Source: Mytilus trossulus (Eukaryota). Taken from it: DNA of 64,000 bases. The notes beneath the pieces were generated by a model that worked only from the letters and a program-made list of their open reading frames with translations, was not told where the DNA came from and did not search any database. Each line of letters begins with the position of its first letter. Within the stretch, counting starts at the first letter, position 1. This document shows positions 4,678 to 58,159 of this stretch, one piece after another. The DNA lies in contig NC_086378.1 in the NCBI RefSeq assembly GCF_036588685.1, forward strand, positions 52,266,001 through 52,330,000. The letters are read 5' to 3'. Both the position numbers and the translations under genes were made by a program.

Positions 4678-5565
4678 TTAGCCTCCATTATGTCTTGGTG
4701 GCCTTGCTGGAATATGCATTTCTGTCTTCATTGTTGGAGGACGCTCGTGTTCAATTTTGGGTTTCATCACCGCCGATTGAGCGCATCTCACTGGAACTTT
4801 TGATTCTGCAATTATATCAGTATTACCAAGTTGCATTTCTTTTGATGCAACGAAATACTCAGTTTGGTTGCTACCATCTGTAGAGATGCACGGGTGTAAT
4901 TTAAGCTGACGGAGGCGACGTTCTGGTCTATGAGTATTATCCGTCATACTATCATCATACCCCATTAATCTGAACATTGGCTTGACATTTTCAATTGCTC
5001 CCTGGACGAGTTTGTTATGTGTTACCAAGAGGTCCTTTAATTTTTGGAGTGGCAAATTGAAATCTCCTCCAATCAGAACTTCTACACCATGTGTCCATGC
5101 CAGGTATTGCGCCAACCATAAATAACTTGTAGCTTGTTGTTCTAGTTCCTCGGATTCTGCTTTTGTGAGGCTGTGATGCCAGCTGATGCAGTGGAACTGC
5201 TTGACGACATGCTGAGTTGGTTGAGGTGATAATATGTTCATTAATGGGAAAATCATTTGGCCTAATTGTACACCAGGTACCTTCAATGTTGGTATTAAAT
5301 CAAACCAATTTTGCATTTCTGGCTCTAATCGTTTGGAGTCGTACAGAAGGACAGTCTCCGAACTGAAAGCCAAATTTACTGGGCGGTAATCGTTGAGTGC
5401 GAATGAAGTCATATCTGGATTGTTACCTGGTAGAAACACCATATCGGGTTCATTCTGCCAGATTACATCATTCAAATAAGATTTTTGTTCAGATTGACAC
5501 TGCTCTCCATTTCTACCAAACAGTTTCATGCTTATAATGTTGAGTCTGTCTGTATATTTCCCCAT
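4678..5565 (-). CDS. EEP/DNase I-like fold protein, paralogue 1 (295 aa, single coding exon; probable pseudo-enzyme)
   Basis: The ORF aligns end to end with 13598-14488 and 22586-23476. It has EEP-type motifs IISM(K), EPDMVFL, CISWH and IGGDFN. The true start is probably MGKYTDRL (ATG at 5565), which matches the MGRD starts of the paralogues and follows a splice acceptor (AG at 5572-5571). The 14 extra N-terminal residues of the track ORF (5607) are likely intronic. Confidence 0.85.
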   Translation of the reverse strand: MGKYTDRLNIISMKLFGRNGEQCQSEQKSYLNDVIWQNEPDMVFLPGNNPDMTSFALNDYRPVNLAFSSETVLLYDSKRLEPEMQNWFDLIPTLKVPGVQLGQMIFPLMNILSPQPTQHVVKQFHCISWHHSLTKAESEELEQQATSYLWLAQYLAWTHGVEVLIGGDFNLPLQKLKDLLVTHNKLVQGAIENVKPMFRLMGYDDSMTDNTHRPERRLRQLKLHPCISTDGSNQTEYFVASKEMQLGNTDIIAESKVPVRCAQSAVMKPKIEHERPPTMKTEMHIPARPPRHNGG

Positions 5566-5702
5566 TTTACCTTTAAATACAATGAGTTTTTCATAAATAT
5601 TATTCATTCATTCACAATCTCTATACATAGAATGGAACAATAAAACGAGATAATGATATTGTCAACTCTATTGAAACCCCAAAGAATATTGTCTCATATT
5701 CA

Positions 5703-5975
5703 GGTGGTACCTAACACTACAGGGAGATAACTTTGTAAAATCAGCTAACCGTTTTAATTACGTTGTGTCTGAAGTCAATATTAAGCTTCTCAATGATTAA
5801 AATAAGTGTATGTCAAACTGCTATATAACCAGTGTCTTTTTTTCTGACAAAACGGTTGGTTAAAATTTTTTGAAATTTGTATATTTTTGTCAAAGGGTCA
5901 AAGTAAATACTTTGTTAAAATTTTATGAAAATTAAACGAGTCAAATTAATTTTAGTGAAAGTGTTGGGTACCACC
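5703..5975. mobile_element. MITE with GGTGGTACCYAACAC TIRs and TTAA-type target (Kolobok-like)
   Basis: Left ttca|ggtggtacctaacact, right agtgttgggtaccacc|ttaa. Confidence 0.7.
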
Positions 5976-6125
5976 TTAAGCATTGGTAAATTCATCAAAG
6001 CAGTCAGTACTGCAGGGATGTTTAGATTGCTATAATGCTTGTAAGCGCATTTCTTTTTCTTTATGAAGATTATGTTACAATCCTTTGCTATGTTGGATTT
6101 TTTTGGCAAGGGGGGGATTTTTATA

Positions 6126-6940
6126 CAAATATATCATGCTTATAAGGGGTATTTGCCAAAAATACCGGTTGAGAGGTTCAAATTTCCAGAGCCGATAGGC
6201 GAGGGAAATTTGATTACCTCGAAACCGGTATTTTTGGCAAATACCCCTTGTAAGCATGATATAATTGTTTAATTCCACCGAATGTTCCACCCCAGTAAGT
6301 TTATTATAATCAGGTATCATATGTAAGTTCTATTTGAATGTTTCATTTTTGTAAACACTGCCGCTGTGCTATTTGCGCAGTCAAATTGCAGTGACCGTAT
6401 AATGGTCTATAATCATTTCTTATCATTTTTTTTTATGTAAAGTCACTAGCTGACCTTTTTGTGATAATTTGCTGATTCTCGGCGGACTACTACACTTAGT
6501 TCATCAGTTTGACTGAAGCGTAATACAAGTGGATTCCAGTTTTATGTGACCAGTTGATAGTTCATTTCCATTGAATTTTATTTATGACGTCATTAAAAGT
6601 ACAGGTTCGCGGAATTTTAACGTCATTCAATAATGATGCTTTTTATTCTTAATATTTCATCTGGAACCGTATATTTAAAATGACCATGAATTTGTCATCT
6701 TAGAATAGAAATAATTAATTGAGTTATTTTTAGACATGGTTTTCCCCATCTGCCATGGTATTTGCTAGGGTATTCCCCATCTGCCATGGTATTTGCTAGC
6801 AAATTCCCCGGCACATGGAATTCCCTAATGACAAATACCCCGGCAGAGAAAAGAAAATATCAAAACATAGAAATTGGTTAAAAATACCATGTCTCTCATC
6901 CAATCAAAATACAGCATTATTACATAAGGTGGAATTATAT
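6126..6940 (+). mobile_element. long-hairpin element 1 (Crypton-like non-autonomous)
   Basis: Hairpin 6130-6263, then a module bracketed by TAATTCCACC (6270) and GGTGGAATTA (6928-6937), with CCAATC at 6900. Confidence 0.6.
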
Positions 6941-7390
6941 GTAAAATACACATTGTAAAAAATATTTTAACGTAAGTTTATGGCAGAATTTGTTGATCGT
7001 CATTCTTGTGTAAACGCCGCGTTAATACCCTTATATATCACACAGCAGAAATCTTATTGTGAATGCTATCATTCCATTAAAAGCAAGAAGAATGATAATT
7101 GAAGAATTGATATGTCCATAAACTCGCACATAAACGATTATATCAAACAGATTTTCAGAAAATGAAATACAATTCTATAAATAGATTTGTGAGTCGATTA
7201 TGTAACACTACGAATCGAAAATAGATAATGTGTTGTATGATAAAAAGGAATTTGTTAACAATAAAGGTAGAGTAGCTTTGTTTCAAATAGATGTTTATAT
7301 GTTGGTAGACATGGTAGAAGAATACTATATTTTTCAAAATTTCTTGACCCTTTTCATTGACGTTCCACATTTAGGATATATATAACTTAC

Positions 7391-7452
7391 CTTATAGTTA
7401 CGTTAAATTATTTTTCAATTTATTTATTTGAAGTTTGACCCGTTTTGAAGTT
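7391..7452 (-). other. predicted non-coding exon 2 of EEP paralogue 1 (62 nt)
   Basis: Minus-strand acceptor tttcattccacaagcag| and donor ataag|gtaagt at 7390. The size matches the equivalent exons of the other two paralogues. Confidence 0.55.
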
Positions 7453-9840
7453 CTGCTTGTGGAATGAAAATAAGATTTCTTGAAATAAATTAAGAAAATT
7501 TGAAATCAAAATTGATCGCGGACTGATTACGATATTGTCTTTTGAGTTCAAAATATACCACAGGGTGTTTGCTACAAACTCGAGGCTACAAAATCTATAT
7601 ATTCATAATAAAACGTCAATATTGTTCTATTTGGTGAATTTTAATGCATTGAATTTTCTCGTTTTATTGTTGCATATAAGTATATATCAGTAAACTTTTT
7701 ATGATATTCTGAATGGAGAATGTATCCAAAGAAAGGGAATAAATAGACCACGATTAAGTTATGATCATAATGACGCATAACTCCCTAATAAAATAGGTAT
7801 TTTAAGACAAAATTATTCGGGCACTGTTTAATTCCTTAATTTTATAATGGAATTACTTTTATCATTTTAAAATATTAAATATATTGTACTTTTGAATAAA
7901 AATAATTCATATTGTATTAAGCATATTTTGAAAATGACATATAATTATTTACTAACTCCTCAGTCAATCCTCGTTTTGTTGAAAAAGCTACAAATTTTGT
8001 TGCGAAATCTACGATGAGGTATAATAAAGAAATATTGAATTACTTATTTTCAATAATATGATAGAACAGGGATACTAACAACGTAGGTCCAACTTCTGAT
8101 CCTCAACAATTTAAAAGAAGTGTCAAAACTCAAATACTAATATTTGTTTAAGTAAAACCCTCGTGTGCATTATGATTTCAGTCAATGTTCCAATTATCAT
8201 CCAGTTTGATTGATTGTACACCCATAGTCAAACGTGAAATTGTTCGCGACACCCGACCTTCCTCTATCAATAACAGGCTGCTGCCACCGCTGATTTTTCA
8301 ACAGAAAATGTATTTATACTTTATTAATTTCATAAAGTATTGTTCTTATTTATGTTTATTATACATGTTTTCTAATTGATACTAGCGATATTTTTGAAAA
8401 TGTTTTATGAATTGCCTGGTTACTTTATCAGTAAATAAACCTACGGTTATTTGACAAGATTTCAGCTTCAGAAAAAGCTCCAGATAAATCAGAGCCATTT
8501 CCTATATTTACAACATTATACACAGTAGCAGGGGTATAGCAAGATTTTAAAAGTTATATGATATGCCTAATAAAATAATTAAATCAATCTAAAACACTAT
8601 ATGATATGAGAGTATATTAGTGTATGAGGCTGTACAATGACACATCAAGTTGATCACATCCACGTCTGGAAGATAATTGTCTCATGGGAAATCAAAGCGT
8701 ACCAAGTCTGTTTCACTAGTCTTTTCATCGTCTATTAAACCGGTTTAAGGAAGTATACGCTTGTCATGTTTTGGGATTTTTGTCAGATTTTCGGAAGCCT
8801 CTGGATTTATTCATTTGAATGCCTTGAAAACATTGCCCGTTGACTCCCATTTTTCTTTTTTTAAATCTTTTGCATGTATAATGATAAGCCATCAGCAAAA
8901 GTCTTATAACATTTATATTATTTTTTAATTGTTTTTTTAGAACTTAAACTTGTCAAAGATAAAGCTATAAAGAGTCAAGAGAGAAAATTTTCCCGCCAGA
9001 AATTCAATGGCTTATATGTATTTTTATTTCGTTTGAAATAGGGTTTTTCCCGTTTGCTATTTGTAGTTAATATTTACAGATGGGAACTAGTATAACTAGT
9101 TCGGATACTGGTTTTGTAACAGTATGTGCTATTTATAAGTTTGATATTAGGTGCAGGAGGCACGAGGAAAGTTTTGGCGGTTTTTATGGGTGGGGTTTAA
9201 AGGTACTATATAAAGTTTGGGATTTAAATGTATTAGTATCGAAGGTGCTCGCAGTTACGTCGGATTGAAGTTGGTCACATAGGTATATGTGCAGTTGCTG
9301 CTATGTTTATTGTACGTACAGGCGTTGGAGGCATTAGCCGGGGGAAAAGAAACGATGCGAAAGAGGAACAATGTTATATGTCATGTGTTTATATAATGTT
9401 TCGATTGAAGAAATATGTGCAATTCAGTAAAATAAAATATTGTATCGCAAGAGAAAATAAGATGTTACTGCGAGCAACTAATCCTATATCTGTGTTTGTC
9501 TTGTTTATAGCTTAATGAATTAGAAATTTAATGCTTTAAATTCGGACGAGCAGGGCGAGGGAGAATTTAAATCTCGAAAACTATCACATTGACCAATATA
9601 TATTTGTTGCTCTTTCTATTACGTTATTAATTCCCTATCAATATAAAATAGTGTTTTGAAAAGTTAATTATTTTGAAACTGACAAGCCAACTCCCTTACG
9701 AAATAAGATTGTTCTGTAGCTAAAGTTTTGTATTTTTCACTAGAAGCACTTGCATTGTGTGCAATCTGTTTGAATACAAATACAATATATGTAAGATATG
9801 GATAAAGAAGTAATGAATAAGACGAAAGTATAATCCTTAC

Positions 9841-9944
9841 CTGTTCTTGGATGTCAGCTTATTGAATGCAGCGATGTCTATAAAAATTTTCTACGCCGCA
9901 AATGGTTTAAACCAAAATCTCAGAAAACTTCCAACTATAAATAG
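9841..9944 (-). promoter_or_regulatory. predicted core promoter and non-coding exon 1 of EEP paralogue 1
   Basis: Donor cag|gtaagg at 9840. A TATA-like CTATTTATAG (9944-9935) is followed by TTGGAAGTTTTCTGAG, a block also found upstream of the other two paralogues. Confidence 0.5.
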
Positions 9945-11754
9945 CGTGTACTAGTATTCTAATAATACGAAGCGGATTTTACGTTTCCTTAAATAGCTCG
10001 AGATGATATACAATGTTCTACAAACTTAACAGGAATGAAAGAAACATACTTATATCATTAGCAGATCACAGACAAATCTTAAATCTGAAACTGATTTCGC
10101 TATTTTCTTGGCAATTGAAAATAAAATAAAGACACATTGCAATCTTTAACAACAAAAACACTAAAGACCGATAACGAAGTAAATATAATGTGTATACATA
10201 GTTGCTTAAATAAAGTTCAACGTATCAATCGTCTAAAATCTCTTAGATTAGGATATCGATCATATCTGGATCCGTCTCCAATATTTTTAGTTTCGAGCAA
10301 TTCTTTAAACAAATATAAAAAAGGTATAATCTTAACTGATATCTGTTACTTTACATTTTTTTTTCGTTTGAATTAAAAAAAAATATTGAACATGTGGCGT
10401 TATGTTTGAAAACAGTAAGGAATTAATGAAGTTACTATAATTAAGTAATAAATCTGTTCTATAATCTCCACTTATTAAAATGGTTGTTAGAATACTGCAA
10501 CCCAATATAACGTCTTTACAATCACCTGTTTAATTATGGCAACAGTGACAACCGAGAGTACATTTGAGGAACAAGGTTTAGATTTCAAGGATCAATGTTA
10601 AAAATAATATGCACAAAAGGGAAGAAATTGTTTTTTTCCGGAATTCTCTCATCATTCTGATTTAGCCTCATTGTTGTGTTCATCTGAGAGAAAGACCGCT
10701 TCTTGCAAAATAAAGTATAGAAAAGGTGCATAACATACCACATACAAACGACAAACAACAAAGCAATAACTATATGCATAACATGAGTGAACACACTGGC
10801 ACACAAAACATGAGTGAATATAAAGGTATTTTATTGTTCAAAAAAGACTTGCACAACAATAGCTCAGAAGACAAGCAAAATTATGGTAATGTCATAAAGT
10901 AAATCAGGATGATGTTCAATTAAACTGATTATATCAATGCAAAACTTTATGATTACCAGGATTGATTTCCATATTAGACAGGAAAACTTTCATTAAGGAT
11001 GATACAATGTATGTGTATTTCGCAAACTTACAAACGTTCTATTTTGGTACATTTTTAGGGGCTTCTTTTTGTCATGGTATTTTTGTTTTGTATTGAATTT
11101 CTGTTTGTATGATTTTACTATTCGCTTATTCCTCTTTGTATATCTTCCCTCTTCCTATTGGTTTTCTGCTCCTGTTTACCTTGACTTCTCAGTTGTATTG
11201 TTTGTGTATTTTCCTCCAGATAGTGATTTTTATATCCCTTTATACACTGTTAGATCGATTTAAATTAGTTGTTATTTATTTCATTCATAATATAAAATTG
11301 AGGATGGAAATGGAAAATATGTCACAGATCAGACAACAACCGATTGGTGTACAAAATATCCAATCATTATATACAAATCCCGCAAGAAAATTTTACAAAT
11401 AATACATTTTATAACATCATACAAGAGAACCTTTGATTAGAACCTGGGTTGTCATAAAAACATATATCAGGAGAAAAGACTTTTCGTTTGAATTTCTTTT
11501 GATATTATTTATGAAGTCATGCACGTGTAATAGGTATTAAGGTCATGAGTATATATTTTTATTCAGCTTTTAAAAAAGTCAAAAGTGAAAGTAGAATTTA
11601 CAATTTTAGAAGAACTATTCACTAATTATAACTTTATGTGAACATCGTGCTAGCCTTAAACTATTAAATATGATCAAAGAGTAGAATATATGAATTGATT
11701 TTATTATTCATAACACACAATCCTTGAGAGACACTGACAGAAGAAAATAAAAAA

Positions 11755-12077
11755 TGGGAGGGTTGAGATCTCATAAACATGTTTAACCCCGCCGCAGTTT
11801 TGCGCCTGTCTCAAGTCAGGAGCCTCTGACCTTTATTAGTCTTGTATATTTTTTAGTTTTAATTTCTTGTGTACAATTTGGAGTTAATAATTTTAGTATG
11901 GCATTCATTATCACAGAACTAGTATATATTTGTTTAGGGACCCGCTGAAGGACGCCTCCGGGTGCGGGAACTTCTCGCTTCATAGACGACATGTAGGTGA
12001 TCTTCTGCTGTTGTTTATTCTATGGTCGGGTTGTTGTCTCTTTGACACATTCCCCATTTCCATTCATAATTTTATTA
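11755..12077 (+). mobile_element. 3' end fragment of family A PLE-associated repeat
   Basis: Matches 30045-30360 (gggagggttgagatctc...cacattccccatttccatt). Confidence 0.85.
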
Positions 12078-13597
12078 CTCGTATCGAATGAAATACAATG
12101 TGCATTTTCCACGAAAAAATAAAGAGAGCGTATAATGTTATGCAGTGTTTATATAGACACTTATTCCTTTAAATATACATCGTCATCAGTAAAATATCCA
12201 CAAAGTCATTTTGATTAAGTTTGATCAACCGCATACTGAGGAGTACAACTTGTCAAATCAAAAATCAACAACCGACTCAAAAAAACGATGGACGCACAAA
12301 CAAAAGAAAACAACCTCGAAATGTATAGGATCCAACTAGCTGACTAAGTATCATACATAAATGATTTCCAAAAAAAAAACGATTATTTTTATAGTTTTCT
12401 GAACTCATTTGACTTAAATCATGTACAAAATGTATAAGCATGTTTGTTTATTATTTGGTAATTTTTACATTTTGTCATATAGTTTTGTCCAGATATTACC
12501 CTGTTTGTCTCTTCCTCATTTTAGAAGCAAATACTGTTGAAGATATAAAAGAGTCGTAACACGGGGCAACATTAAAATTTCAATTTATGATAACATTTCA
12601 AAACAATTGTGTGTGTTTTTGTTGGGTTTGTTTACTTGCTGTTGGTACAGTTAATTTAGATTTATAATAGTTATGTTCTCACGTTTCATCTATATGGTAT
12701 CAAATGCTACAAGCGTCCCCCAACTACAGTTTTTGTTGTTATCTGTATTGAGTTCCTCTTTCGGTGACAATCGTGTCCATTGATTATTTATTTTACGGGA
12801 TTTAAAAAAAAAAATTGAATAAAATTAATTGTTCAACAATATATCCTATGTGTCTCAAAACTCACATTACTACTTAGCTTCGAGCATGAAGGGTGTACAT
12901 GATCGACAATAACATTATAATGTAAAGATTTTTCAAGTCATTTGTCAATCAAATGATTGCATCAATACAGCTTTTTATGTTGGGTTCGTTTTGCTTCTTC
13001 TCTTCTTTGCTACCCAATTTGATCAATAATTAAATTATGGTATATTAACATAAACTTTATTTATAAAAATTAAACTAAATACATATAAAACATATCTGTC
13101 CGAAGGAAGACAATACAATGTACACATAATTCCACATAAGGCTTGCATAAATCATTTTGTAAAACGAAGTAAATAATGTTTTATGTATCAATATTACACA
13201 GTGGATTCAGAAACTCCCTAATAAAAGAAGAGTATGTATATGTCTGCAAATATTAGTCTTCAACAAGTCATATAATGCTTTAAAGTGTAAACACAATATC
13301 ATCGTTTCCAATCCATTTGAATCATAATAAATCAATCACAATATTAACATGTAAAATATCAAAATAATATAGTAAAACAGTCTTTATTTACAGAGTAATT
13401 ACTACTTAATAAACCTATAAATTTCATAATTTTTTTTCTCGGATTTGTTACCTTTATTTATTTTTCTATTTTTGAAGGATAAAATAAACATATATACTAA
13501 TAAAATGAAACCAGATAAAGGCGAAAGACAACCTTTACGAATAATACTTAGAATCTATATACAGGTAATTTAATAAACAAAATAAAAGGAAAAGATT

Positions 13598-14488
13598 TTA
13601 ACCACCGTTGTGTCTTGGTGGCCTTGCTGGAATACACATCTGTGTCTTCGTTGGCAATGGACAGAAATTCTGTACAGCTGGCCTGTTCATCGTCAGAGTG
13701 GTGCATCTTCCTGGAAGTGTTGACGCTGTCATCATTTCGGTCTTACATAGATTCATTTCTTTTGATGCGACAAAGTAGTTGGTGTCCCCGTTAATCCCTG
13801 CCACCGACTTACACTTGTGGAGTTTAAGTTGTCGGAGTGCACATCCTGGTTCTTGTATATATTCTGTCATTTCATCCATATATCCATGTTTCCTGAAAAA
13901 TGGTTTAATATCTTCGACGCCCTTTTGAATGAGGGTATTGTGTTCATCTAGAAGCTCTTGTATCTTCTTAATTGGCAAATTAAAGTCGCCTCCAATCAAG
14001 ATCTCTACTTTAGAAGTCCATCCAAGATATTGTGCAAGCCATAGATACCGAGACGCAAACTGATAGAGTTCCTGTGATGTTGTTTGAGTAAGCTCCCAAT
14101 GCCAGCTGATGCAATGAAATTTCTTGACCGTATGTTGAGTGGGTTTTGGAGCCAAGACTTCGAACAAAGGATACATTAACTTGCCTTGTTGTATGCCAGG
14201 AACTACCATAGATGGCACCATATCGTACCAATCTGGTGTACTCAATTTCAATCTCTTCGTATCGTACAAAAGTACAGTTTCGTGGTTATGATGGACTTGT
14301 GTTTGGCGATAATCATTTAGTTCTGAGGACGACATATCAGGATCGTCTCCGGGCAGAAATAATAAGTCGGGTTCATTGTCTCCGATTACATCTTTTAAAT
14401 AAGACTTTCGATAGTCCTGATATTGCCGTCTTTTTCTTCCAGAAGCATTCATGCTAACGATTGTAAGTCTGTCTATATCTCTTCCCAT
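13598..14488 (-). CDS. EEP/DNase I-like fold protein, paralogue 2 (296 aa)
   Basis: Intact ORF with IVSMNASG, EPDLLFL, CISWH, IGGDFN and C-terminal IPARPPRHNGG. An acceptor (cttacag|, ending at 14499) lies just upstream of the ATG. Confidence 0.88.
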   Translation of the reverse strand: MGRDIDRLTIVSMNASGRKRRQYQDYRKSYLKDVIGDNEPDLLFLPGDDPDMSSSELNDYRQTQVHHNHETVLLYDTKRLKLSTPDWYDMVPSMVVPGIQQGKLMYPLFEVLAPKPTQHTVKKFHCISWHWELTQTTSQELYQFASRYLWLAQYLGWTSKVEILIGGDFNLPIKKIQELLDEHNTLIQKGVEDIKPFFRKHGYMDEMTEYIQEPGCALRQLKLHKCKSVAGINGDTNYFVASKEMNLCKTEMMTASTLPGRCTTLTMNRPAVQNFCPLPTKTQMCIPARPPRHNGG

Positions 14489-14988
14489 ATTTGATTTTCT
14501 GTAAGTATAGTTTAAATACTATTTGAGTAACTGATATCAGTAGTTCTGAATGCAAAGAACGGTGAAAATATAATTTGAAAAATGATCATGTCTATTAACT
14601 CGTCCATAAACTGATTGAACTTATTTTCAGAAAATGTACACTACCCTAAAAATAAATCCGCGATCGATTACATAATTTTACACACAAAATAATGATTAAA
14701 CTTGTTGTACATTTAATGTGGATGTATATACACAAAGATAGTCGGTTTGGTTTGTATCCTTTTTTTTTGTGTAAATTTTTAACAATAGTTTTACTTTCCG
14801 CACCCGGGTTCTTTTTTCTTTTAGTATTCATTCGATTTCTGCTGGTTTCGTCTTTTATCTTTATTTTTGTCTGTTTACTCTTGTTAATGAAAAAATGAGA
14901 TTTGAATATTAGTTAACTGTACGAATATGTGTTGGTTTAGTGTTTACACATGAGACATGAAATGAGATAATAACAATTAACTTCTTAC

Positions 14989-15056
14989 TTTTTTCTGACC
15001 TTCTTTATATTGTAGTTGTTTAAATTCCTTTATTTGAATTGAAAATAACGCTATTT
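14989..15056 (-). other. predicted non-coding exon 2 of EEP paralogue 2 (68 nt)
   Basis: Acceptor ttttttttcag| at 15057 and donor gtaaga at 14988. Weak similarity to 7391-7452. Confidence 0.5.
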
Positions 15057-15290
15057 CTGAAAAAAAATCTTTATTTTACAAACATAAATATATTTTTTAT
15101 TTTCTTGCAGTCCATTTTTTATGGATTTCTTTTTTGTGAACTCATGATTTAACTTTTACTTTCACAATCATCAAAACGATTTTTGAAAACTACTGTCATA
15201 AATGCACATATTTCATATATTAGTAAGTAAATACGACGTATTTAGCTCAGACAGTAAAGATACTGTTTGTGTAAAATTTAAAACACTAAC

Positions 15291-15384
15291 CTGTATAGTT
15301 CTGTCGTCGAATGCACAACTGCAATACTTAATAACATGCGCAGTTAATAAAAATGAATCTCTGAAAACTTTCAGATGAATTTAG
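15291..15384 (-). promoter_or_regulatory. predicted core promoter and non-coding exon 1 of EEP paralogue 2
   Basis: Donor cag|gttagt at 15290. The shared block (plus strand ctctgaaaactttcag) starts at 15359, but the TATA position is degenerate here. Confidence 0.45.
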
Positions 15385-16620
15385 TATTCGATCATGAGCC
15401 TGAAATAGATTTGGGATTTTCCACATGTATAAAAATAGCTTTTGATTTGATAAAATTCAAAACCTCAGAGTTCAAAACATCAATATACCAAATCATTTAC
15501 GATGTGATGATAATTTATAGATATGTGGATTTCTTATGAGAATTACAGTCAATTAGCGCTTGAACTGTTTCGAAAGATGAACATGCAATTAGTTTTCAAC
15601 TATTTTAAGCTTTGACCTTTCCTTATGAAAATAAATCTAGACAATCACTTTCAAAGCATGAGCTAATAACGTGGTGTTATCATTTTTTGTACGAACTGAT
15701 CGATATTATTATTGATACTTTGGTTGGGTTAACATGCAATAACGTTAAAATAAATAGTAAAGATTTGTCAAAAAATCCAAAATTTAATATTAAAAGAAAA
15801 ATGTTTTTTATCAAACGTGTTAAAAATAAAGCCAACAGTTGTAGACCACTGTTCGAAATTCATAACTCGATTGCGAAAAAGAAACATAAATCAAGTTACA
15901 AACTAAAACCTAGGGAAACACACCAAATACAGAACGTTTTAGTGTATTTACTTTTCACCATTTTTATTGTGAAGTGGAGTTAGATTTTGAAATTGAATGC
16001 ATACAATGTATCTTTATCAGTGTCCGTGTTGCATTTGTATAAACGTTTACACTTGTTTGGAAGTTAAACACATCAAAACTACCTTCCCTAGTTTTGAATG
16101 TAAATCGTGAAAATGTAAGCATACCATTTAGGTTATAGAGGACTTCATGTATTTAAACATACTGTCTTTGTTATAATTCGTTCCAATTTTTTGACATATA
16201 TGTATAATACGTGCATGCCTGACGGACTTTTCAATAAATAAATGAAAGTGAAAATAAAAGCTAAATCGAGAGTTAACTATGTTAACAAACAGAACATAAG
16301 TTGATATCATTTTGAATAGGATTTTTCCAACTGTAATTAAATTCAAAACAGCAAATATTTATATAAACATAATAGGAGGGATTGTGAATGGTTTTCATTT
16401 TATAAAAATATACTCTATCAACAAGCTTAATCTCTTTAATCTAGGTCTGAAGCTTGCATGTCTGAATCTGCCTATGTAGAAAATAATGGATTAAACCTGG
16501 TGTTAAAGCTAGCTAAACCTCTCACTTGTATGACAGTCGCATCAAATTCCTTTATATTGACAACAATGTGTGTACTAAACAAAAAGACAAAATTGTTAAA
16601 AATGTCATACATCAAACTAT

Positions 16621-17106
16621 TAGTTACATAGTGTGTTAGTGACCTAAAACCAAAAATACGGTGTCAGTAAATTCCATATGGGGTGAGAGTGTATTAAGTC
16701 ACTAGCACACTATGTAACGAATGTATCCTACCGACTATATTCATTTGTTGAATATTTAGAATAGAGCTGTCACATTTCCATTCAAACCATATCTTATTAT
16801 TATTATATAAAAGTGTTCAAGTGATCAATTTTAAGAACCTTCTTCCATTGGTCTGCACACAAAATAATAATGTCAGCAATAACAATTTAAGATCAGTAAC
16901 CGTTGTATACAAATATTGAACTGAATTTTCAATACATTTGAATAATAAAATATTGCACAAGTCGTAAGTCCACTACTAACTGTGTATTGAAATAAGCCCC
17001 CCCCCCCCTTTTTTTACCTACTAACCTAATATGGAATATACACGGTCTTCAAGCGGGCGCTTTTAACCAATCATATTCCTAGAAATATATAAGAGGTAAG
17101 ATAAAT
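16621..17106 (+). mobile_element. long-hairpin element 2 (Crypton-like)
   Basis: Hairpin 16623-16718; ATGTATCCTACC / GGTAAGATAAAT brackets; CCAATC at 17067. Confidence 0.5.
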
Positions 17107-18559
17107 GATAATACCGTCCACTATGCACCATACTCCCATTACAACATACACGTTTTCTTAAGGATTGTTTACCTTTTGAGGGTAAAATTACAAATCGAGT
17201 TCACACTGTCCAATTAAATTTCTTAGTCTTATATCGATTTGCTTTTCTACCACACGCGTTCATTATTATTATCATTAGTCTGTTCCTATTTATTCTCCAT
17301 TTCTGCAAAATTATTGATTTAGTTTAGAATCATGTTGCTGTGTCATATTTCGTCTTACGATTGAAGATCTGTGCAGAATTAAATAATCTGTAAGTTATTT
17401 CGGAAAAGTTGAAACTGAATTAAATCGAATCAATTTTAATGCACAGACATATGAATGCTAAATGTGGTAGAGTTTCCGGGGTGTTTATCTGTAACTTTTA
17501 AGTAGTTTATTTTTATTTATTCTGACCAGCATCTATCCATGCAAACTACTCATGCTTTCCAATTTATTCGATATAATTCAACTCCGAGATACATTTTTTA
17601 TATAAAAACACATTCGTGCAACCCAATCAGGAGTGGATTTTACATAGATAGATAAAATCGTATTATAAAAGAGCATTTTTGTTTTTTAATTTGAGGAATG
17701 CCGTTTTGTGATTCTTTGTTACATTTGTTTGTTTTTATAGTGATTTTAAAATGATAACAGAATGGTTACTGTTGCACCCCTATTTTTGACATTTTTACCT
17801 AATGTGTCTGTTTGTTTTGCTCCCGCATCGTCTCAATATAATGGAGTTGAATGCAACAGCCATTCAAGTCAGAGGTTTAGCTAGTTTTAAAACTAGATTA
17901 AATACATCTTTTTCTACATGGGAAAATGACTGTACCAAGTCCGAAATATGACAATGGTTATCCATTCGTTTGATGTGTTTGAGCTGTTGATTTTGTGATT
18001 TGATTTATAATGACTTTTCAATTTAAATTTTCCTTAGAATTCCGTATTTTTGAGATTGTACTTTTCTAGTGTAAATGAAATACCTTTTGAATTTACATGT
18101 TACATTTTTTTGAAGTAGATGATGCACAATAAAAGTAATCTGAGTTCTACAGTCTTTTTTAATTAAAAAAAGTATCATGTGTCTGAGCTTTTGATTTTGC
18201 CATTCGATTAGTGACTTTGCTTTTTGAATTTTTCTCGGTGTATTGCTTTATAGTTTTAGTTTCATTAATTATAATTATAGTCTATGTTTTAAAATCCACA
18301 GTTTTTTATTTAAGAATTTTGAAATGAAGAATAAGACGCGACAATTGGCACAAATGATAGTCGATTTCAAATTGAGATATTCGGAGTTATTTCTAGGTAA
18401 ATCCAGAAAAGCTCAAATTTAACCGTGTTATTTTCATTCATATAATTTTGTTAATCAAGTTTTTTAAAAAATTCCTGTTGTATTAAAATTTTATGTTCTA
18501 TCATAGACATGCTTATATATGGAATAAGTAAATTATATATATTTGATTAAGGAATCTGC

Positions 18560-19450
18560 ATTTTGTAAATTTCTTATATACTTGTATTTCAACGACAGAC
18601 AATTCCTTATGACACCTCTTAGAAAGGGTAATACCTGAAGTTCTCTGTAACAACACTGTGCCGACGACTTTTTAGAAAAGTTGCTGTTTCTTATCTTTTG
18701 TATAAAACAATAGAATGTGTAGATTTAACCTACTGAACTTTTATAAAGCGTATATTGATAATAATCACACTGCCTTTTCCGGGATCTTGATTTTACCTTT
18801 ATCTTCAACGGGAAGCTGAATTTCAAAATATGAGATAAAAGTGATGATTTTTTCATTATTATTAATTATTGATTTTTAAATGATGACGTTCCCTTGTAAG
18901 CGTCTTATAGTGTTTATGTATTTTAACTTGTTCGATTTGCTCATGTGCGTAACAACATATTCGATTTGTAGCCTCTGACAAATCTCTGTATTACTGAAAC
19001 ATTATTTCAACAAGATTTTTGATCACTCAAACTAGTCAAAACATTTACTAAATGTTATCATCGGTACAAGGACACCATTTGTAAACAAATAAAAACAAAT
19101 CAACAAGAACATATCTTTTACGTCTAGGTATTTCACAGCAATATTCTATACAAGGCATTTACCTTACAAAAAGTAACCAAGCCTTAAAACAGACTTATTT
19201 AAAAGGGATATAGTTGCTACTTGTATACTGTTGTAATGTCCATAAAGGTAACATATTTTGGTATAACTATTGATTCATCCATAGGGTCGTTTCAACGGAA
19301 ATAAACTCCTTTATTCTAGGACCAGTTATTGACATGATACAGGAGGGATTTTGCTTGATTTTTGCTTTAATTACGAAATAATCTTTCAGTCAGTTTAGTT
19401 GAAGTGTAGAACCGGCATGTCAGTAACTGCTTGTAATCATTTGTTTATTC
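18560..19450 (+). mobile_element. decayed Penelope-like RT fragment (family A)
   Basis: Homologous to 29330-29900 (cttgttcgatttgctc..., cactcaaactagtcaaaacatttactaaa), with many indels. Confidence 0.75.
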
Positions 19451-22400
19451 ATCTATCCTTAGTTTCCTTTGTACCCATAAATCATTTGTAAATTGTAGCT
19501 TTCAAATTTGTACATTAATTTCGATTTAAACAAAATCCAATTTAAACTCGAAAATGAAGTCTTATGTGACAATGCTCAGTCATGATTCTACTTCGTCAAA
19601 ATTATCTCCCCATTACGCCAGTTCCTTTTCACATTGCACTATTACAATCCTTATATGCCAGTAATTTTTTTAAACGACAAATGTATCAACTAGCAAATGA
19701 GCATCAGTTAATATCTTGTCTGCATTGATTCAACTAAAAACTATTGTCTGATCGGTTGTCAGGTGGAAATTAAAAAAAATCTAATTAAATATTTCTTGAA
19801 AGGGCAGACTAGATCTTTTTAGTGGTTGAAGACTATAAACCCTAGTTATCACACACACAAAATTATAATTTTTCAAAGACATGCAATTTCATCATCCAAC
19901 TTGGAAGACTGTCACCAAGTACTTATAGTAAAAAACATAGCTATTCGATCACACCTACTCTGATTTTTTGATTCATTAGGTATTTCATTTGACCAATATA
20001 TTTTATCTTTTAGCATTGTGATTTTTTATGTTATAAAGTCAACCTGTAGCTTTGATATATAAAAATGATAGAATCTGAAGCTACACGATGTATGAAATAT
20101 TCTTGCGTTGTACGATATCAAGACAAAATATTCAAAATATTCAACAACAAAAAACTCAGACACGCCCTAAGATAAAAAGGTGCACTCGATTTTCACTTTT
20201 CGATACATTTATTACCGTTTATGGGAATTTTTTCTTGAGTCACATAATGAAAGTACAGACACGAAAATTACTGAACTAATAGATTGATATCTTTTCCGTC
20301 CGTGGTAATTTTTAAACATTAATCGGAGGTTATGCCTTTTTACTACATCCAACTTGAAAGATATTTATGTCGTCGACTTGATATCTAATTGTTCTGCTTA
20401 GCTGTTTTAGATAGATTGAAAACTTATGCAAATGGTGTTTTAAAAAAATCCAATTCGTAATTAAGAAGAAAATTGTCATTTTATTTGTTTCTATTAACTT
20501 TTAAAACTTGTGTTTCTATAGTAAACATTACAGTAAGCATTTATCGCCTCTCTAACAAAGAGCTTCGAATCTTTTGTTCTATTTCAACCGGTTTTCCGAC
20601 TGTGCTGTTTTCTATGAAACAACCATTGACAAATTTCATCATGTTGTGCTTTTGCATGTTCCTGTTTTTAATTTTTATCACAAAACAAGTATTGTAACAT
20701 AAATGGAGTTGAACCTAGCTTGCACTAAGTTTTATTCTGTATGCATTTCTGTGCATGTGGTATTATCTTTGTCCTTAAGTTTCGTTGTTGATAGCTGTGT
20801 CATTGATAATCGTACCAAATCTTCGAATTTTTATATTGTGATGGACTTTTTCAACTGCATATACTTGTTTTTAAAATATTGATAAGGAATAATAATGAAA
20901 TATGTTTTATTTACAATGTAAGATGCTACAAAATGATAGTTACAATGTTGTAACACATATATTTAAAGCTTTTGCTCTTTTGATTAAAATTTGAAATTAC
21001 TAACAAAGATTAAATAAGCCACTTATAATTTAGAAATGAGTCAATTACTTCGTAACATATACAAGCTTTGTCTTTCTTTCCATAAGTTCAAAAAATACAT
21101 CAAATCCTTTTTTACATGTAATTTACTTAATGTAGTAGCAAATACAAGTAGTGGATATGTTTTTAAAAGAGATTCATTTTCGAAAATTCATTTCATCACC
21201 AAAACGAAACTATAAAATCGATTATATAACCTTTAGTCTGAACATTTCTCTCCAGACTGGACAGGTACATACTATTCATTTATTTTGAAGATGAAACAAT
21301 TATCGAATGTAGGACTTTGAACTTTTTTTATTGATTTGTATGTTGCATGCTGATTTTCTTCTCTTTTTTATTTCATACACTTATTTTGCATCAATGCTTA
21401 CAAACTAATACTATGATGCTTATATTATTGCTATGAGTTATACAAAGGATATAAATAAGTGTATGTAAATAGCAGTGACTCATAACAATGATACCATATT
21501 TTCCGGTCATTAAACTATTATTTATGAACTGACTTTTTCAACAAAATTGCCGATTGCATGCTTGCATTTAAATGACCATATGCAATTAAAAAAAAAGGAA
21601 TACGAATAAAAAGTTTGGCTTACCTCTACATTATGTGGTATTAATATAATTGATTTAAAGGGTTTATATAAGTACTTCAAAATAAATGTTTCACTTAGTT
21701 GACAGAGCGAATGATTTAATTGCGATAACATAAATAAATGATAGCTAACCGTCAAAATAATTTACAAAAAGGATAACACATAAAGCTGAAGATGTACATA
21801 CAAATGTTTAATAAATATGTCAAACATAAAATCTGTTTACAAGGATATGGCACTTTGAAATGCTTTTTTCTAAATATAATAAAGAAATTAACGATATAAA
21901 ATCAATAACAAAATGTGATTTTAAAACCATAAAACTGAATTTCACAGAGTAATATAATCATGTGCAATAATACAGTACAGGAGCACAAGTTATTAACTAT
22001 CAAATTGACAATCAAATACACAATTCACACAAAGGTAGATATTTTTTATTGGAATGTTAATTAATACTCAAACTTTGTGCTTTACATCCTGAACAATTTT
22101 GAGAATTGAAATGTGATTTAGTGATATTGAAAACAAAACCTAAATATTAACAAATAAATCACACTTTTATCTATTGTAAAGATTACAATTTTCGCGTGTT
22201 GTTTGTTTTCTTGAAAAATTATTCACACAATTTATTATGATTTTTAAGAAAAATCAAAATTAGGAACTCGAAAAAAGAAAATAGAACTTCGCAGACAATG
22301 CAAGTATGTTTTTCATATTCAATAGGTTTGATTCAATACAAATAAACAACTTTCACAAATATATATACGAAATAGAAAAAATGAAGGATCCTTATTCAAA

Positions 22401-22585
22401 AACAAAAGGGTGAAAAAAATAAATAAAACTTGTTTATTTTTTTTATTTTTTTTTTTTGCGGGATGCCCCTATTTGTCAATACATTATATTAAAAAAAAAC
22501 ATGAAAAAAACTCCCACCGTAGACATGATACCTAATTTTGATTGGTTACAAAACATAACCAAAAACCATATATATAGATTTGATT

Positions 22586-23476
22586 TTAACCACCGTTGTG
22601 TCTTGGCGGTCGTGCAGGAATACACATTTCTGTTCTCGTTGGTGCAGGACAGTATTGATGTTCAGCTGGTCTTGTTACAGTTAGATTTGTGCATCTGCCT
22701 GGCAGGATGGAAGTCGTCATCATTTCCGTATTACATAGCTGCATTTCCTTTGAGGCAACAAAGTATTCGGTTTCCTGGCTAACGCCTGAAATAGATCTAC
22801 ACTTGTGGAGTTTGAGTTGTCGAAGCCGTCGTCCCGGTCGATTAACATTATCCGTCATTTCATCCATGTATCCCATGTCCCTGAAAAAAGGTTTGACATC
22901 TTCAAATGCTTTTCGAACGAGTGTATTATGTTCATCTAGAAGCTTTTGAATAGTTTTAATGGGCAAATTAAAGTCGCCTCCTATCAGGATCTCTACTTCA
23001 GAAGTCCATCCAAGATATTGCGCCAGCCATAAGTAACGACGTGCAAACTGACAAAGTTCATCTGTTGTTGTTTGCGTGAGCTCCCAATGCCAGCTTATAC
23101 AGTGGAACTTCTTGACAACATGTTGAGTCGGTTTAGGAGCCAGGATATCAACTAAGGGATACATGAGTTTGCCCGTGTGTATGCCAGGAACTACCAAGGA
23201 TGGTATCAGATCGTACCAGTTTGGGGTTTTCAATTTCAACCTCTTCGTATCGTACAAAAGTACAGTCTCGTGATTATGAGCGACTTGTGCTTGACGATAA
23301 TCAGTTAGGACTGGTGAAGACATGTCTGGCTCGTCTCCAGGCAAAAATAATATATCTGGCTCATCGTGTCCTATAATTTCGTCCAGGTAAGACTTTCGAT
23401 AGTTTTGATACTGTTTTCCTTTCCTACCGGAAGCATTCATGCTAACTATCCTTAATCTATCTGTATCTCTTCCCAT
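22586..23476 (-). CDS. EEP/DNase I-like fold protein, paralogue 3 (296 aa)
   Basis: Intact ORF, closest to paralogue 2, with the same motifs. An acceptor (ccctttcag|, ending at 23482) lies 5 nt upstream of the ATG. Confidence 0.88.
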   Translation of the reverse strand: MGRDTDRLRIVSMNASGRKGKQYQNYRKSYLDEIIGHDEPDILFLPGDEPDMSSPVLTDYRQAQVAHNHETVLLYDTKRLKLKTPNWYDLIPSLVVPGIHTGKLMYPLVDILAPKPTQHVVKKFHCISWHWELTQTTTDELCQFARRYLWLAQYLGWTSEVEILIGGDFNLPIKTIQKLLDEHNTLVRKAFEDVKPFFRDMGYMDEMTDNVNRPGRRLRQLKLHKCRSISGVSQETEYFVASKEMQLCNTEMMTTSILPGRCTNLTVTRPAEHQYCPAPTRTEMCIPARPPRHNGG

Positions 23477-29329: not shown

Positions 29330-30360
29330 GATTTGTACGATTCGCTCGTGTATGTAACAATGTTTTAGATTTTAACGAGAGAAATTTATGTATTACTGAA
29401 AAATTATTACACCAGGGTTTTCGATATCACAAACTAGTCAAAACATTTACTAAATTTTATCATCGGTATAAAGACATCATTCGTAAATATAGCTCAACAT
29501 GCAGACTTTTTATACGTTCAGGTATTTCACATCCAATTTTTTATGGAAATATTCTTTATAAAGCACAAAGGTGTCAGTATTCACCTCATAAACTTACAAA
29601 ACCTTTGAATAGACTTATTAAGAAGGGATATAATTACGATACTGTTGTCAAGTCATTAAAGATTGCATATTTTGGCGTTAATATTGAGTCACTGATAAGG
29701 TCTTTGCGTCGGAACTAAACACATTTATTCTAAAAACAGTTGTTGGCATGACACGGGTTATGTTCTTCTCATATATGTTATGATGGTATGATACTAAACC
29801 CCTTACGGGAAGGATTGTGCCTGATGTTCATATGATGAAATCATAATCTTTCAGTCAGTTTAATTGAAGTCTGGAGCTGGCATGTCAGTTAACTGCTAGT
29901 AGTCTGTTGTTATTTATGTATTATTGTCATTTAGTTTATTTTCTTTGGTTACATCTTCTGACATCAGACTCGGACTTCTCTTGAACTGAATTTTAATGTG
30001 CGTATTGTTATGCTTTTACTTTTCTACACTGGTTAGAGGTATAGGGGGAGGGTTGAGATCTCACAAACATGTTTAACCCCGCCGCATTTTTGCGCCTGTC
30101 CCAAGTCAGGAGCCTCTGGCCTTTGTTAGTCTTGTATTATTTAAATTTTAGTTTCTTGTGTACAATTTGGAAATTAGTATGGCGTTCATTATCACTGAAC
30201 TAGTATATATTTGTTTAGGGGCCAGCTGAAGGACGCCTCCGGGTGCGGGAATTTCTCGCTACATTGAAGACCTGTTGGTGACCTTCTGCTGTTGTGTTTT
30301 TTTATTTTGGTCGGGTTGTTGTCTCTTTGACACATTCCCCATTTCCATTCTCAATTTTAT
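29330..30360 (+). mobile_element. 5'-truncated Penelope-like retroelement (family A): RT C-terminus plus ~640-bp 3' region
   Basis: VRFARVCNNVLDFNERNLCITEKLLHQGFRYHKLVKTFTKFYHRY resembles the PLE RT thumb region; stop at 29718. The 3' region recurs at 11755-12077 (+) and 46803-48025 (-). Confidence 0.8.
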
Positions 30361-30479
30361 TAGACATATTTTGGAGAAAAAAACAAGTGGGATAGATGAA
30401 AAGATGGACACTTTGGTAGATCATTAATCTTCCTGACCCGTGACAACACATAAAAAATATAAGTTTATTTCAATGAGAA

Positions 30480-31275: not shown

Positions 31276-32398
31276 TCCCTTTGTGTGTGATATTTTCGAG
31301 GACAACCTTACATACATGCACTAATTTGGTTAAAATGATTAAAAAGGATTGCATGATAAATAATATCATTTAAGTAATATAGTATAAGTGTTATGTTCAG
31401 TAATTTTTTTTTAAATGACAGTGACAATATCACCAAGCACAATACTATCCGTTCAATTACTCGGCTTTTCATAATTTGTTTTAGTACTGTGATATGTTTC
31501 TGCCTTTTTATAGCTAATCTTTTATATAATTTTATGGATGTAAGCTTTTCTTATTCATGTGTTATTGATTTTGTTTGAGTTTAACATTTGAATATGTACA
31601 TAAAGGGAAATAACCGTGTTGTAAAAATCGACAAAGAAACAACTCTTCTGAGTTTTAATGTCCCTCTATCTGGTATCTCACCCTCTTTTAGAGAAACTGA
31701 TTCCACCACCGAATCTCGTGCAAGGCGATATTTATTCTCAGTCGGGTTTTAAATTTGAAAATCTAGCTGTCTCGAATGGATAAATATCGTATCATACTCG
31801 TTGTCGTGGTAGAATCTATATGTATTTTTCTCCTCTCTTTCATGAACTATGTAACTCTCAATATAGAACCAAGCCAACAAACGTTGTAAAAGAGTGTGTA
31901 ACTGATTTAGAGTACTGTGGAATACACATAATTCTTAAATGAATAGAAGATAACAGTTTCAAATAAAACACCCACTAAGGATGAGATTCCTGGCATAATT
32001 TGTTTTATAGCTGACCATGCTGTATGGGCTTTGCTTATTGTTGAAGGCCGTATCGTGACCTATAGTTGTTAATGTCTGTGTCTTTTTTGGTATATTGTGG
32101 GGAGTTATCTCATTGGCGATCATACCACATCTTCATTTTTATACAAGCGCTAAAAGGTGATTTCACCTCTTCGAACCAAGAACCAGATCTTCAAACATAC
32201 GAATATAAAACATTTAAAAGGTAGAACGTATAAAAATCAAATAAGAAACAAAAAAGTATCTAATATAAAGCAACAAGATCGGTTGAGCACAAACACATAT
32301 AAATAGGTCTTAAAAAGGTCATTTTATCTCAAAAAATTTAGAACTATAACCAGAGATAAGAAAATAAACAATTAAAAAGGGGGAAGGATATAAAAAAT

Positions 32399-32787: not shown

Positions 32788-33116
32788 CAACTTACGACCA
32801 TGCAAATGAACACACAGCTAATTTTGAACTAATTGTATATTGCTGACTACTATTCTCTATGAATCAATAACAAAAGAAGTGCCAAGGTGATTATGTAATA
32901 GTGATGATTAATGTTCTGATGTCATAGGCTGGTTCTAAAATACATGTCATATAATGAGTCCGATTCATTGGTTTTTTTTCTATACATCGGGTCAAACGTT
33001 TGAAACGTCTTGCACAAACTCAAAGCATAAATCTTAAATAAAAATAACTCGTCCCAAATCATTATAAGAACTTTAATCCTTATTTTTATATAAAAAAAAA
33101 CAAGTCATCATATAAC

Positions 33117-58100: not shown

Positions 58101-58159
58101 TACATTACACGTCTTCATTTGTTATAACAAGTGTTTTGAATATCAGCAAAGAGATTAAT

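Follow-up and report, generated by a model that had tools for sequence, protein, structure and literature searches.

A bivalve family of tandem genes with a predicted endonuclease/exonuclease/phosphatase fold and an altered catalytic site in Mytilus trossulus

Five tandem genes and their history

The window analysed here is a stretch of 64,000 nucleotides from the mussel Mytilus trossulus (contig NC_086378.1, positions 52,266,001 to 52,330,000 of the forward strand), with a G+C content of about 31%, and it carries three paralogous genes whose products are predicted to adopt the endonuclease/exonuclease/phosphatase (EEP) fold. Exactly three open reading frames (ORFs) of at least 150 amino acids (aa) lie between positions 4000 and 24500, all of them on the minus strand and with start-to-start distances of 8920 and 8988 nt. 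Copy 1 (coding sequence at 4678..5565, 295 aa counted from the conserved MGK start) reads SMK and LPGN and is the most degenerate copy in the window. Copy 2 (13598..14488, 296 aa, a single exon) and copy 3 (22586..23476, 296 aa) both read SMN, LPGD, SWH, and GGDFN, followed by TNY in copy 2, which is the copy that was modelled, and by TEY in copy 3. The mechanical ORF of copy 1 is longer (4678-5607, 309 aa) and reaches an upstream ATG at 5607; its start is most likely the second ATG (5565, MGK...), judging from homology with copies 2 and 3 and from an AG acceptor 5 nt upstream. Such an acceptor stands 5 nt before the conserved ATG in copies 1 and 3 alike, as ...ctttcag in the latter. Protein identity is 54% between copies 1 and 2, 59% between copies 1 and 3, and 76% between copies 2 and 3, and DNA similarity between the units of the array is limited to the ORFs.

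A previous reading of this DNA from its letters alone, hereafter the sequence-only reading, had described a trio of intact paralogues of about 295 aa, some 9 kb apart, with neither signal peptide nor transmembrane segment and with no linked reverse transcriptase. The description of the three genes was accurate. A hydropathy scan found no signal peptide or transmembrane segment in the three window proteins (the Kyte-Doolittle mean over 19 residues peaks at 0.81-1.16, and the N-termini are charged), and the seven other ORFs of at least 85 aa in positions 1-32000 gave no match to a reverse transcriptase. The trio is, nevertheless, only the part of the array that falls within the window. A six-frame search of the whole 1.3-Gb genome returned five matches, all free of stops, all on the minus strand, and all on one contig, such that the three genes belong to a five-gene tandem array with two extra intact copies just upstream of the window start. 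Copy D (L003, contig positions 52261902-52262795, minus strand, 298 aa, 72% identity to copy 2) lies 3.2 kb upstream of it and copy E (L005, 52256724-52257533, minus strand, 284 aa, 50% identity) 8.5 kb upstream. The latter is the most distant member of the array, with GGNFN and LHGD instead of GGDFN and LPGD and with a shorter tail, TPKKHSGG. One of the members outside the window is identical, over the parts compared, to the NCBI Mytilus trossulus protein P0005.

Copy 2 is transcribed and spliced. Its stretch is present, whole or in part, in 20 of the 24 runs listed, from 10 studies, and in the four runs that we mapped, each from a different study, contigs span 13091-14495 at 99% identity or more. 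This interval corresponds to the coding sequence, about 500 nt of 3' untranslated region (UTR), and a short run of bases before the ATG. The 3' UTR (13091..13597, minus strand) is delimited by contigs at 13091/13105-13624 and 13595-14000, with a depth of about 0-2 below 13097. On the 5' side, a joint 14495->14989 in run X1, with 27 letters on its shorter side, supports an intron of 490 nt (14499..14988, minus strand, GTAAG...TTACAG) whose acceptor lies 10 nt upstream of the ATG, and eight loose letters at 14495 in run X2 agree with the same junction. Beyond this intron there is a 5' UTR exon (14989..15056, minus strand) and, upstream of the exon, a second intron that appears in X1 as a joint 15059->15296; its borders are approximate, with a canonical GT at 15290 and AG at 15057 within 2-6 nt of the joint ends. 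Most bins of the unique DNA nearby have no contig cover, and over about 400 nt upstream of the coding sequence the cover is thin (depth of at most 17, in X1 and X2 only); elsewhere only repeats draw contigs, at 90-95% likeness.

Homologues of these genes were searched at several depths: a single-sequence search gave 41 relatives, an exhaustive search of 1.84 billion representatives gave 38 clusters, and a profile search gave 49 proteins. All named members are bivalves, and the absence from other taxa holds for named members only. Their sources are Mytilus (four species), Saccostrea, Ostrea, Magallana, Mercenaria, Dreissena, Sinanodonta, Mactra, Mya, Ruditapes, and Potamilus. In a maximum-likelihood tree built from 48 rows, the mussels, the oysters, and the clam-type relatives each form a clade and a pair from freshwater mussels makes up the fourth group, with support of 98-100. 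Among the mussels, copies 2, 3, and D form one subclade, copies 1 and E fall in another, and each array copy adjoins a relative from another data set or species. Consecutive locus numbers suggest that tandem arrays exist also in Saccostrea, Mya, Sinanodonta, and Potamilus. The family is inherited vertically within bivalves and expanded in tandem, in line with the lineage-restricted expansion proposed by the sequence-only reading. No relative was found in IMG/VR, where none of 11 pattern matches was confirmed. We rejected a viral origin on this ground, together with the nature of the structural matches in BFVD, which are generic giant-virus EEPs. A literature search retrieved no paper on the family, on its tail peptides, or on six LOC identifiers of named relatives, and a broader query listed only unrelated work on ecology and immunology; its scope did not extend to supplementary expression tables.

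The genes of the array are under purifying selection. The ratio of nonsynonymous to synonymous substitution rates (dN/dS, method of Nei-Gojobori, NG86, with four pairs not computable) is 0.155, 0.171, and 0.131 for the three pairs that copies 2, 3, and D make (dS of 0.96-1.19) and 0.368 between copies 1 and E, at dS of 0.97; two further pairs near saturation give 0.104 and 0.167. The earlier proposal that selection keeps the copies intact is therefore borne out, both by these ratios (0.131-0.171 among copies 2, 3, and D) and by the five intact copies out of five. This bears on one alternative to any functional account, namely that these are non-functional ORFs, recent duplicates that have yet to decay. 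Such a view would fit the lack of a known function, the long branch of copy 2, and the dN/dS of 0.37 between copies 1 and E, but the duplicates are old (dS around 1 or saturated) and yet intact in all five cases, they have relatives in mussels, oysters, clams, and freshwater mussels that group in taxon-congruent clades, and copy 2 is transcribed and spliced. We regard the chances of this explanation as close to negligible.

The terminal branch of copy 2 is indeed long (0.19, against 0.022 for its nearest relative, P0002), and its cluster at 90% has a single member. Near-identical copy 2 contigs are nonetheless found in runs under three organism codes. This combination could result from fast evolution, from presence/absence variation, or from samples of hybrids.

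The EEP fold and its nearest neighbours

Sequence comparison at the usual thresholds does not place the family. The three window proteins do not match the Pfam profile of EEPs, PF03372, even at E <= 10, and weak matches below threshold are found in 10 of 33 relatives (best E of 0.0015); P0050 scores 18.3 bits against a cut-off of 24.5. Searching the window proteins against PDB sequences with phmmer gave noise only (the Kv4 T1 domain at E 0.014), and the best match of the family profile in the same data, C. elegans TDP2, had an E of 0.12. Since these searches did not place the family, structure and profile-profile comparison were needed.

The two approaches agree. The AlphaFold 2 model of copy 2, built from an alignment of 37 rows, has a mean predicted local distance difference test score (pLDDT) of 79.0 and a predicted template modelling score of 0.81, with low confidence only at residues 1-3 and 256-272. 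Foldseek returned 232 matches in the PDB at E <= 0.001, and all the top matches listed are EEPs: TDP2 leads (4gyz_B, E 2.1e-8, probability 1.00), and the others include a Bacteroides EEP, CNOT6L, nocturnin, PDE12, the L1 endonuclease (2v0r), and ExoIII. VIA-align placed 262 of 998 chains at a Z of at least 8, the best being 3mpr_D at 17.0, with the TDP2 entries at 15.2-16.7 (root-mean-square deviation of 3.4-3.9 A over 208-223 residues). In these superpositions residues 2..288 of the model match residues 117..370 of mouse TDP2, i.e., all of the catalytic domain, with the last strand as well. Rows that differ by no more than one Z unit count as ties, so that "TDP2-like" designates here the nearest solved neighbour and not membership in a subfamily. 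The model thus shows the four-layer alpha/beta sandwich of EEPs, with a single EEP domain filling residues 2-288. Independently of the model, hhalign aligned the profile of 33 family members to the protein P0072 over 207 columns with a probability of 98.8% and an E of 9.5e-17, and P0072 itself passes PF03372 (E 7.7e-11, 42.6 bits against the cut-off of 24.5). Two UniRef clusters of the family carry the automatic name "Endonuclease/exonuclease/phosphatase domain-containing", and 25 of the 30 feature matches in the ESM Atlas are clusters of PF03372, although at 162 of 256 shared features, below the stated comfort level. The EEP fold claimed by the sequence-only reading is in this way confirmed.

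TDP2 is a tied best structural match, over the whole catalytic domain through the last strand, and no other solved family was detected, even weakly, with the sequence profile (the C. elegans protein mentioned above). It shares with the family the Asn of strand beta-1, PDxxFL, a His that follows the central strand, and GGD(F/L)N. The differences are numerous: identity is 12-13%, the mussel protein starts six residues before beta-1 and has no N-terminal ubiquitin-associated (UBA) region, it has LPGD in place of the Glu and no conserved Asp-His, and it adds a helical insert of about 40 residues after GGDFN and a unique Gly-Gly (GG) tail. The family is not orthologous to TDP2, the UBA-like region, the Glu, and the His all being absent. 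The bacterial stand-alone EEP phosphatases (3mpr, 3g6s, the Bt3783 mannosyl-6-phosphatase 4c1r, and 3l1w) score as high as TDP2 (Z of 15.3-17.0), and are single-domain proteins of similar size; the feature neighbours in the ESM Atlas are bacterial PF03372 clusters. Our searches detected no sequence relationship with them, their taxonomic range is different, and the likeness is one of structural scores. CCR4/CNOT6L, nocturnin, PDE12, DNase I, ExoIII/APE1, neutral sphingomyelinase, and the endonucleases of long interspersed nuclear elements (LINEs) have the same fold and score below TDP2 (Z of 13.7-15.2); the members of these branches are canonical enzymes whose catalytic set is complete. By sequence, the closest relative outside the family is a small EEP group made of P0072 and of P0102 from the clam Mya arenaria, which are related to each other at E 2e-13 and have C(I/V)SWH(GP) and GGDFN in common with the family. 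P0072 keeps LQE, IDF, and DHD and lacks both the helical insert and the GG tail, while P0102 reads LFQN. The two may mark the canonical ancestor of the family; no wider bridging group was found around P0072, which is a singleton.

The place of LINE endonucleases among the structural matches (TRAS1 EN at Z 15.1, L1 EN as 2v0r) raises the question of a mobile origin: the genes might be relics of the APE-type endonuclease of a non-LTR (long terminal repeat) retrotransposon, domesticated or decaying, and amplified by transposition. LINE endonucleases are EEPs, and there are dispersed repeats in the region. Yet no ORF of a reverse transcriptase or transposon lies nearby, all five genomic copies sit in one array, the DNA similarity between copies stops at the ORFs, and the 5' UTR has spliced introns. 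Moreover, the gene tree follows the clades of bivalves, dN/dS is around 0.15, and both TDP2 and the bacterial EEPs outscore the LINE endonucleases. A mobile-element relic appears, in consequence, highly improbable.

Active site and C-terminal tail

The motifs cited by the sequence-only reading are all present, including the loss of the first Asn in copy 1. In the order of copies 1, 2, and 3, the window proteins read IISMK in the first and IVSMN in the other two, PDxxFLPGN in the first and FLPGD in the others, SWH and GGDFN in all, then TEY, TNY, and TEY, and finally EHERP, QNFCP, and EHQYCP before the last strand. The alignment by hhalign pairs IVSMN with INVN of P0072, FLPGD with MLQEF, SWH with SWH, GGDFN with GGDFN, and TNYFVAS with IDFFIHS, and stops short of the DHD of P0072. 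We followed these positions in two alignments, one of 33 rows that covers all clades (A3) and one of 37 rows, mostly mussels and oysters (A2).

Two kinds of positions emerge. On the one hand, part of the canonical set is retained. The beta-1 Asn is kept in 30/33 rows of A3 and 35/37 of A2 (copies 2 and 3 have N, whereas copy 1 has K), the fourth position of LPGD is Asp in 30 of the 33 rows (LPGD as a whole in 34/37 of A2), and the column of the GGDFN Asp is acidic in 30/33 (22 D and 8 E). The full GGDFN is found in the three window copies, in 32/37 rows of A2, and in 20/33 of A3, the clam-type relatives reading GGEMx and similar, and the His of [STN]WH is present in 24/33 rows of A3, with xWH in 36/37 of A2. 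On the other hand, the residues that complete the catalytic site are replaced. The place of LQE, whose Glu binds the metal in canonical EEPs, reads LPGD, or LPGN in copy 1, and none of the 33 rows has a Glu at any of the four LQE/LPGD columns. The Asp of IDY, which partners the catalytic His in canonical enzymes, is missing from the window copies, where TEY, TNY, and TEY align to the IDF of P0072; this loss, which had been presented as a feature of the trio, holds for these copies and not for the whole family, since the column is D in 18/33 rows of A3, and E, N, S, or G in the others. Finally, the Asp-His before the last strand (the "SDH" of canonical enzymes) is not conserved at the sequence level among 49 sequences: within the 15 residues before that strand, 11/49 have a His and 6/49 an acid-His pair, and a Y/F-C/R-P(-x-P) motif occupies the place. 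When the VIA-align ranges are anchored at their ends (residue 287 or 288 of the model against residue 361 of human or 370 of mouse TDP2), the equivalent of the Asp-His of TDP2 would fall at about Cys276-Pro277 of copy 2. The earlier equation of SDH with EHERP, QNFCP, and EHQYCP consequently stands as an approximation given by such offsets, not as a residue-level superposition.

The departure from the canonical set that had been announced is therefore real, with the Glu replaced and no conserved Asp-His, and the class proposed for the family, pseudo-enzyme or altered chemistry, is supported as such, the sensor or decoy roles suggested with it being conjectural. The stronger notion of a dead site fares less well: the Glu and the Asp-His are lost, but the Asn, the LPGD acid, and the GGDFN acid are each kept in 30/33 rows, which argues for a retained metal- or phosphate-binding half-site. 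From the alignments, the family keeps this half (beta-1 Asn, LPGD Asp, SWH His, GGDFN Asp/Asn) without the Asp-His half, and by the same comparison copy 1 (SMK, LPGN) and copy E (GGNFN) have lost more than the other array copies.

Human TDP2 is informative on what such losses entail. A review lists D262, E152, S229, and H351 as residues whose substitutions "fully abolish enzyme activity" and adds that the D350N protein no longer binds Mg2+ (PMC5778467). The family proteins would then not be standard EEP hydrolases, because TDP2 loses its activity when the equivalent His, Asp, or Glu is substituted. They would more likely be binders of Mg2+ and phosphate esters, or very slow or altered hydrolases, directed towards a nucleic-acid end or a nucleotide.

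The main rival to this view is an active enzyme with a rewired site. In that case the Asn, Asp48, His130, and Asp168/Asn170 would bind Mg2+ and activate water, the lost His would be replaced by the Tyr of Y-C-P, by the invariant Lys243, or, if the tail folds back, by its nearly invariant His293, and the protein would be a phosphodiesterase or phosphatase with a new substrate. This is in agreement with the conservation of five canonical positions in 32-36 of the 37 rows of mussels and oysters and of three metal-site positions in 30/33, with the purifying selection on the genes, and with the wide substrate range of EEPs, whose neighbours here include TDP2, the Bt3783 mannosyl-6-phosphatase, nocturnin with NADPH, PDE12, and sphingomyelinase. 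It is at odds with the loss of the GGDFN Asn in the clam-type relatives (full motif in 20/33), with the variation of the IDY Asp (D, E, N, S, G) and the lack of a conserved His or Asp before the last strand, with further losses in two of the five array copies (SMK/LPGN in copy 1, GGNFN/LHGD in copy E), and with a tail that has a pLDDT of 51 and is undocked in the model. On balance we find a rewired enzyme possible and rather doubtful.

The best-conserved part of the family lies outside the fold and plays no part in the sequence-only reading. It is the tail I-P-x-R-P-P-[RK]-H-x-G-G-stop, which in copy 2 reads IPARPPRHNGG plus the stop (13598..13633, minus strand) and is the same in copy 1 (4678-4713) and copy 3 (22586-22621). 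All 48 distinct rows aligned end in GG, 44/48 have PxxPx[RK] within the last 12 residues, and 41/48 end in RPP[RK]HxGG. Two of the eight invariant columns in the alignment of 33 rows are the terminal glycines, and five of the 27 nearly invariant ones are within the last 10 residues. Among 18 further relatives that the alignments did not include, the GG end is present in 13 and absent from five. At the other end, 38/48 rows start with MG, and three of the rows that do not are gene models with an upstream extension and an internal MG. As contigs cross the stop codon of copy 2 without any joint, the GG end is the true C-terminus of its transcript. We considered whether the tail is common to other gene families and rejected it for this genome and for single-exon tails: the back-translated pattern RPP[RK]HxGG-stop occurs four times in the 1.3 Gb, always in array copies, and its reversed control does not occur at all. 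Only synonymous differences separate these four copies over the eight codons covered. The tail of copy 2 is predicted to be flexible and outside the fold, and the PxxPx[RK] of those 44/48 rows would be a putative class II SH3 ligand.

A free GG end has a counterpart in human cells, where, according to one report, more than 95% of random peptides ending in di-glycine (diGly) are degraded via KLHDC2, and where MIC19, with an N-terminal Gly and a C-terminal diGly, is subject to "dual-end" inspection (PMC8013793). The partners or the half-life of the mussel proteins are probably set by the free tail, in which PxxPx[RK] is combined with Gly-Gly in the form of the C-degron of human KLHDC2 and its cullin-RING ligase CRL2. 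Given the Met-Gly start of most members, a Gly at the N-terminus would accompany the diGly at the C-terminus, as in MIC19. The likeness to these substrates is one of ends (the same free GG, and MG in 38/48 rows) and is an analogy only, the folds being unrelated.

The GG end recalls also ubiquitin-like proteins and suggests another rival, in which the free GG is a conjugation handle and an E1/E2-like enzyme ligates the whole EEP domain to a target. In bacterial anti-phage systems of the cyclic-oligonucleotide-based type (CBASS), cGAS-like enzymes are ligated to targets by Cap2. A handle would account for a GG that is invariant in 48/48 rows, that stands directly before the stop and so requires no processing, and that belongs to a flexible tail outside the fold. 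Against it, there is no beta-grasp domain, the sole domain being the EEP fold that fills residues 2-288, no E1- or E2-like gene is found among the ORFs of the window, the literature searched holds no precedent, and a degron or a peptide ligand explains the conservation of GG more simply. We deem the conjugation handle very unlikely.

Taking these elements together, the explanation that we prefer, and hold to be probable, is that of a bivalve-specific family of soluble intracellular proteins derived from a canonical EEP phosphodiesterase, with a half-site kept and a behaviour governed by the tail. We regard both the fold and the loss of canonical residues as well established; the function is what we infer. 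A more specific version, by analogy, would make these proteins conditionally unstable sensors, degraded by a glycine surveillance of the CRL2 type until the half-site binds its ligand, e.g., a viral nucleic-acid end or nucleotide, upon which they would be stabilised, or relocalised through PxxPx[RK]. This version and the conjugation of the whole domain to targets by the GG, even counted jointly, seem unlikely to us.

Several observations weigh against the preferred explanation. First, alignments of the Glu position differ by one residue: hhalign places G47 there, whereas HMMER, in the match to C. elegans TDP2 (E 0.12), sets FLpGd opposite FLQ-E, with a one-residue insertion and Asp48 at the Glu position. 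Second, the missing dyad is read from sequence conservation and end-anchored offsets rather than from a residue-level superposition, and the segment before the last strand is weakly modelled (pLDDT of 65 at 271-280 and below 50 at 256-272). Third, the strong conservation of N14, D48, H130, D168, and N170 in mussels and oysters would suit a working enzyme equally well. Fourth, five relatives without GG exist (P0058, P0059, P0074, P0044, and P0026), which appear truncated, fused, or broken. Fifth, the degron and SH3 readings of the tail are made by analogy with human data only, and an MG start fits poorly the usual preference of N-myristoylation. Sixth, the runs behind the transcript of copy 2 are small contig sets whose RNA label is guessed, and that they are RNA is deduced from the splice joint and from the missing cover between genes. 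Finally, the human survey counts as KLHDC2 substrates only 5 of the 10 native proteins that end in diGly (PMC8013793).

What we describe branches off a well-known enzyme family and is uncharacterised, but it does not amount to a new kind of system. The "undescribed system" announced by the sequence-only reading was overstated: the array consists of a single gene family and has no partner genes linked to it by function. Its interest is of another nature. EEP enzymes are among the best-understood metal-dependent phosphodiesterases, and to our knowledge well-documented non-catalytic offshoots of them are few. Here is a clean, compact, and tandem-expanded family, kept through the whole history of autobranch bivalves, which is a natural test case for what an EEP domain with half a site can still do and, given the exceptionally strict conservation of its GG end, for how native proteins cope with a diGly C-degron or make use of it. 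To the biology of bivalves it adds one more lineage-specific gene family expanded in tandem, with a possible role in responses to stress or infection. If either the sensor or the conjugation reading were true, it would represent a signalling principle specific to bivalves and built on a disabled phosphodiesterase.

Neighbourhood of the array

The seven non-overlapping other ORFs of at least 85 aa in positions 1-32000 have no Pfam match at E <= 0.01, except for a weak one to DUF3974 (E 0.0016). Further along the window there are four single-exon ORFs of rhodopsin-type G-protein-coupled receptors (GPCRs), at 33117-34271 on the minus strand and at 44871-46031, 49874-50734, and 58037-59335 on the plus strand, which match the Pfam profiles 7tm_1 / Srw with E from 6e-15 to 7e-27. 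In Mytilus coruscus, GPCR domains and a member of the family are fused in one gene model, P0096 (538 aa), and the vicinity of array and GPCRs seems, therefore, to be conserved. In a gene model of Saccostrea cucullata, P0074 (538 aa), about 440 aa of Cys-rich N-terminal sequence are followed by a degenerate C-terminal piece of a family member that has lost the GG (...KHNGE...); a neighbouring gene model has probably taken in a decayed copy of the array.

Repeats are found within and beyond the array. The segment 16446-18218 attracts very many transcriptome contigs at 90-95% likeness, with joints between opposite strands that link approximately 16514-16563 to 17819-17945, and is probably an abundant inverted-repeat element, of the foldback type or akin to miniature inverted-repeat transposable elements. 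A direct repeat of about 330 nt, with 87-90% identity, occurs at 11756-12084 and again at 30046-30369, about 18.3 kb apart, and its two units are likely to be copies of a fragment of a transposable element. A purine-rich tandem array at 32399-32783, with periods of 11, 18, and 36 and up to 30 copies, gives rise to the spurious ORFs 32319-32813 and 32344-32805. Another tandem array, rich in CT/CA and imperfect, with a period of about 20-22 and about 19 copies, extends over 37038-37437 and accounts for the dip in GC skew (-0.42) and the G+C content of 0.38 in the interval 36001-38000.

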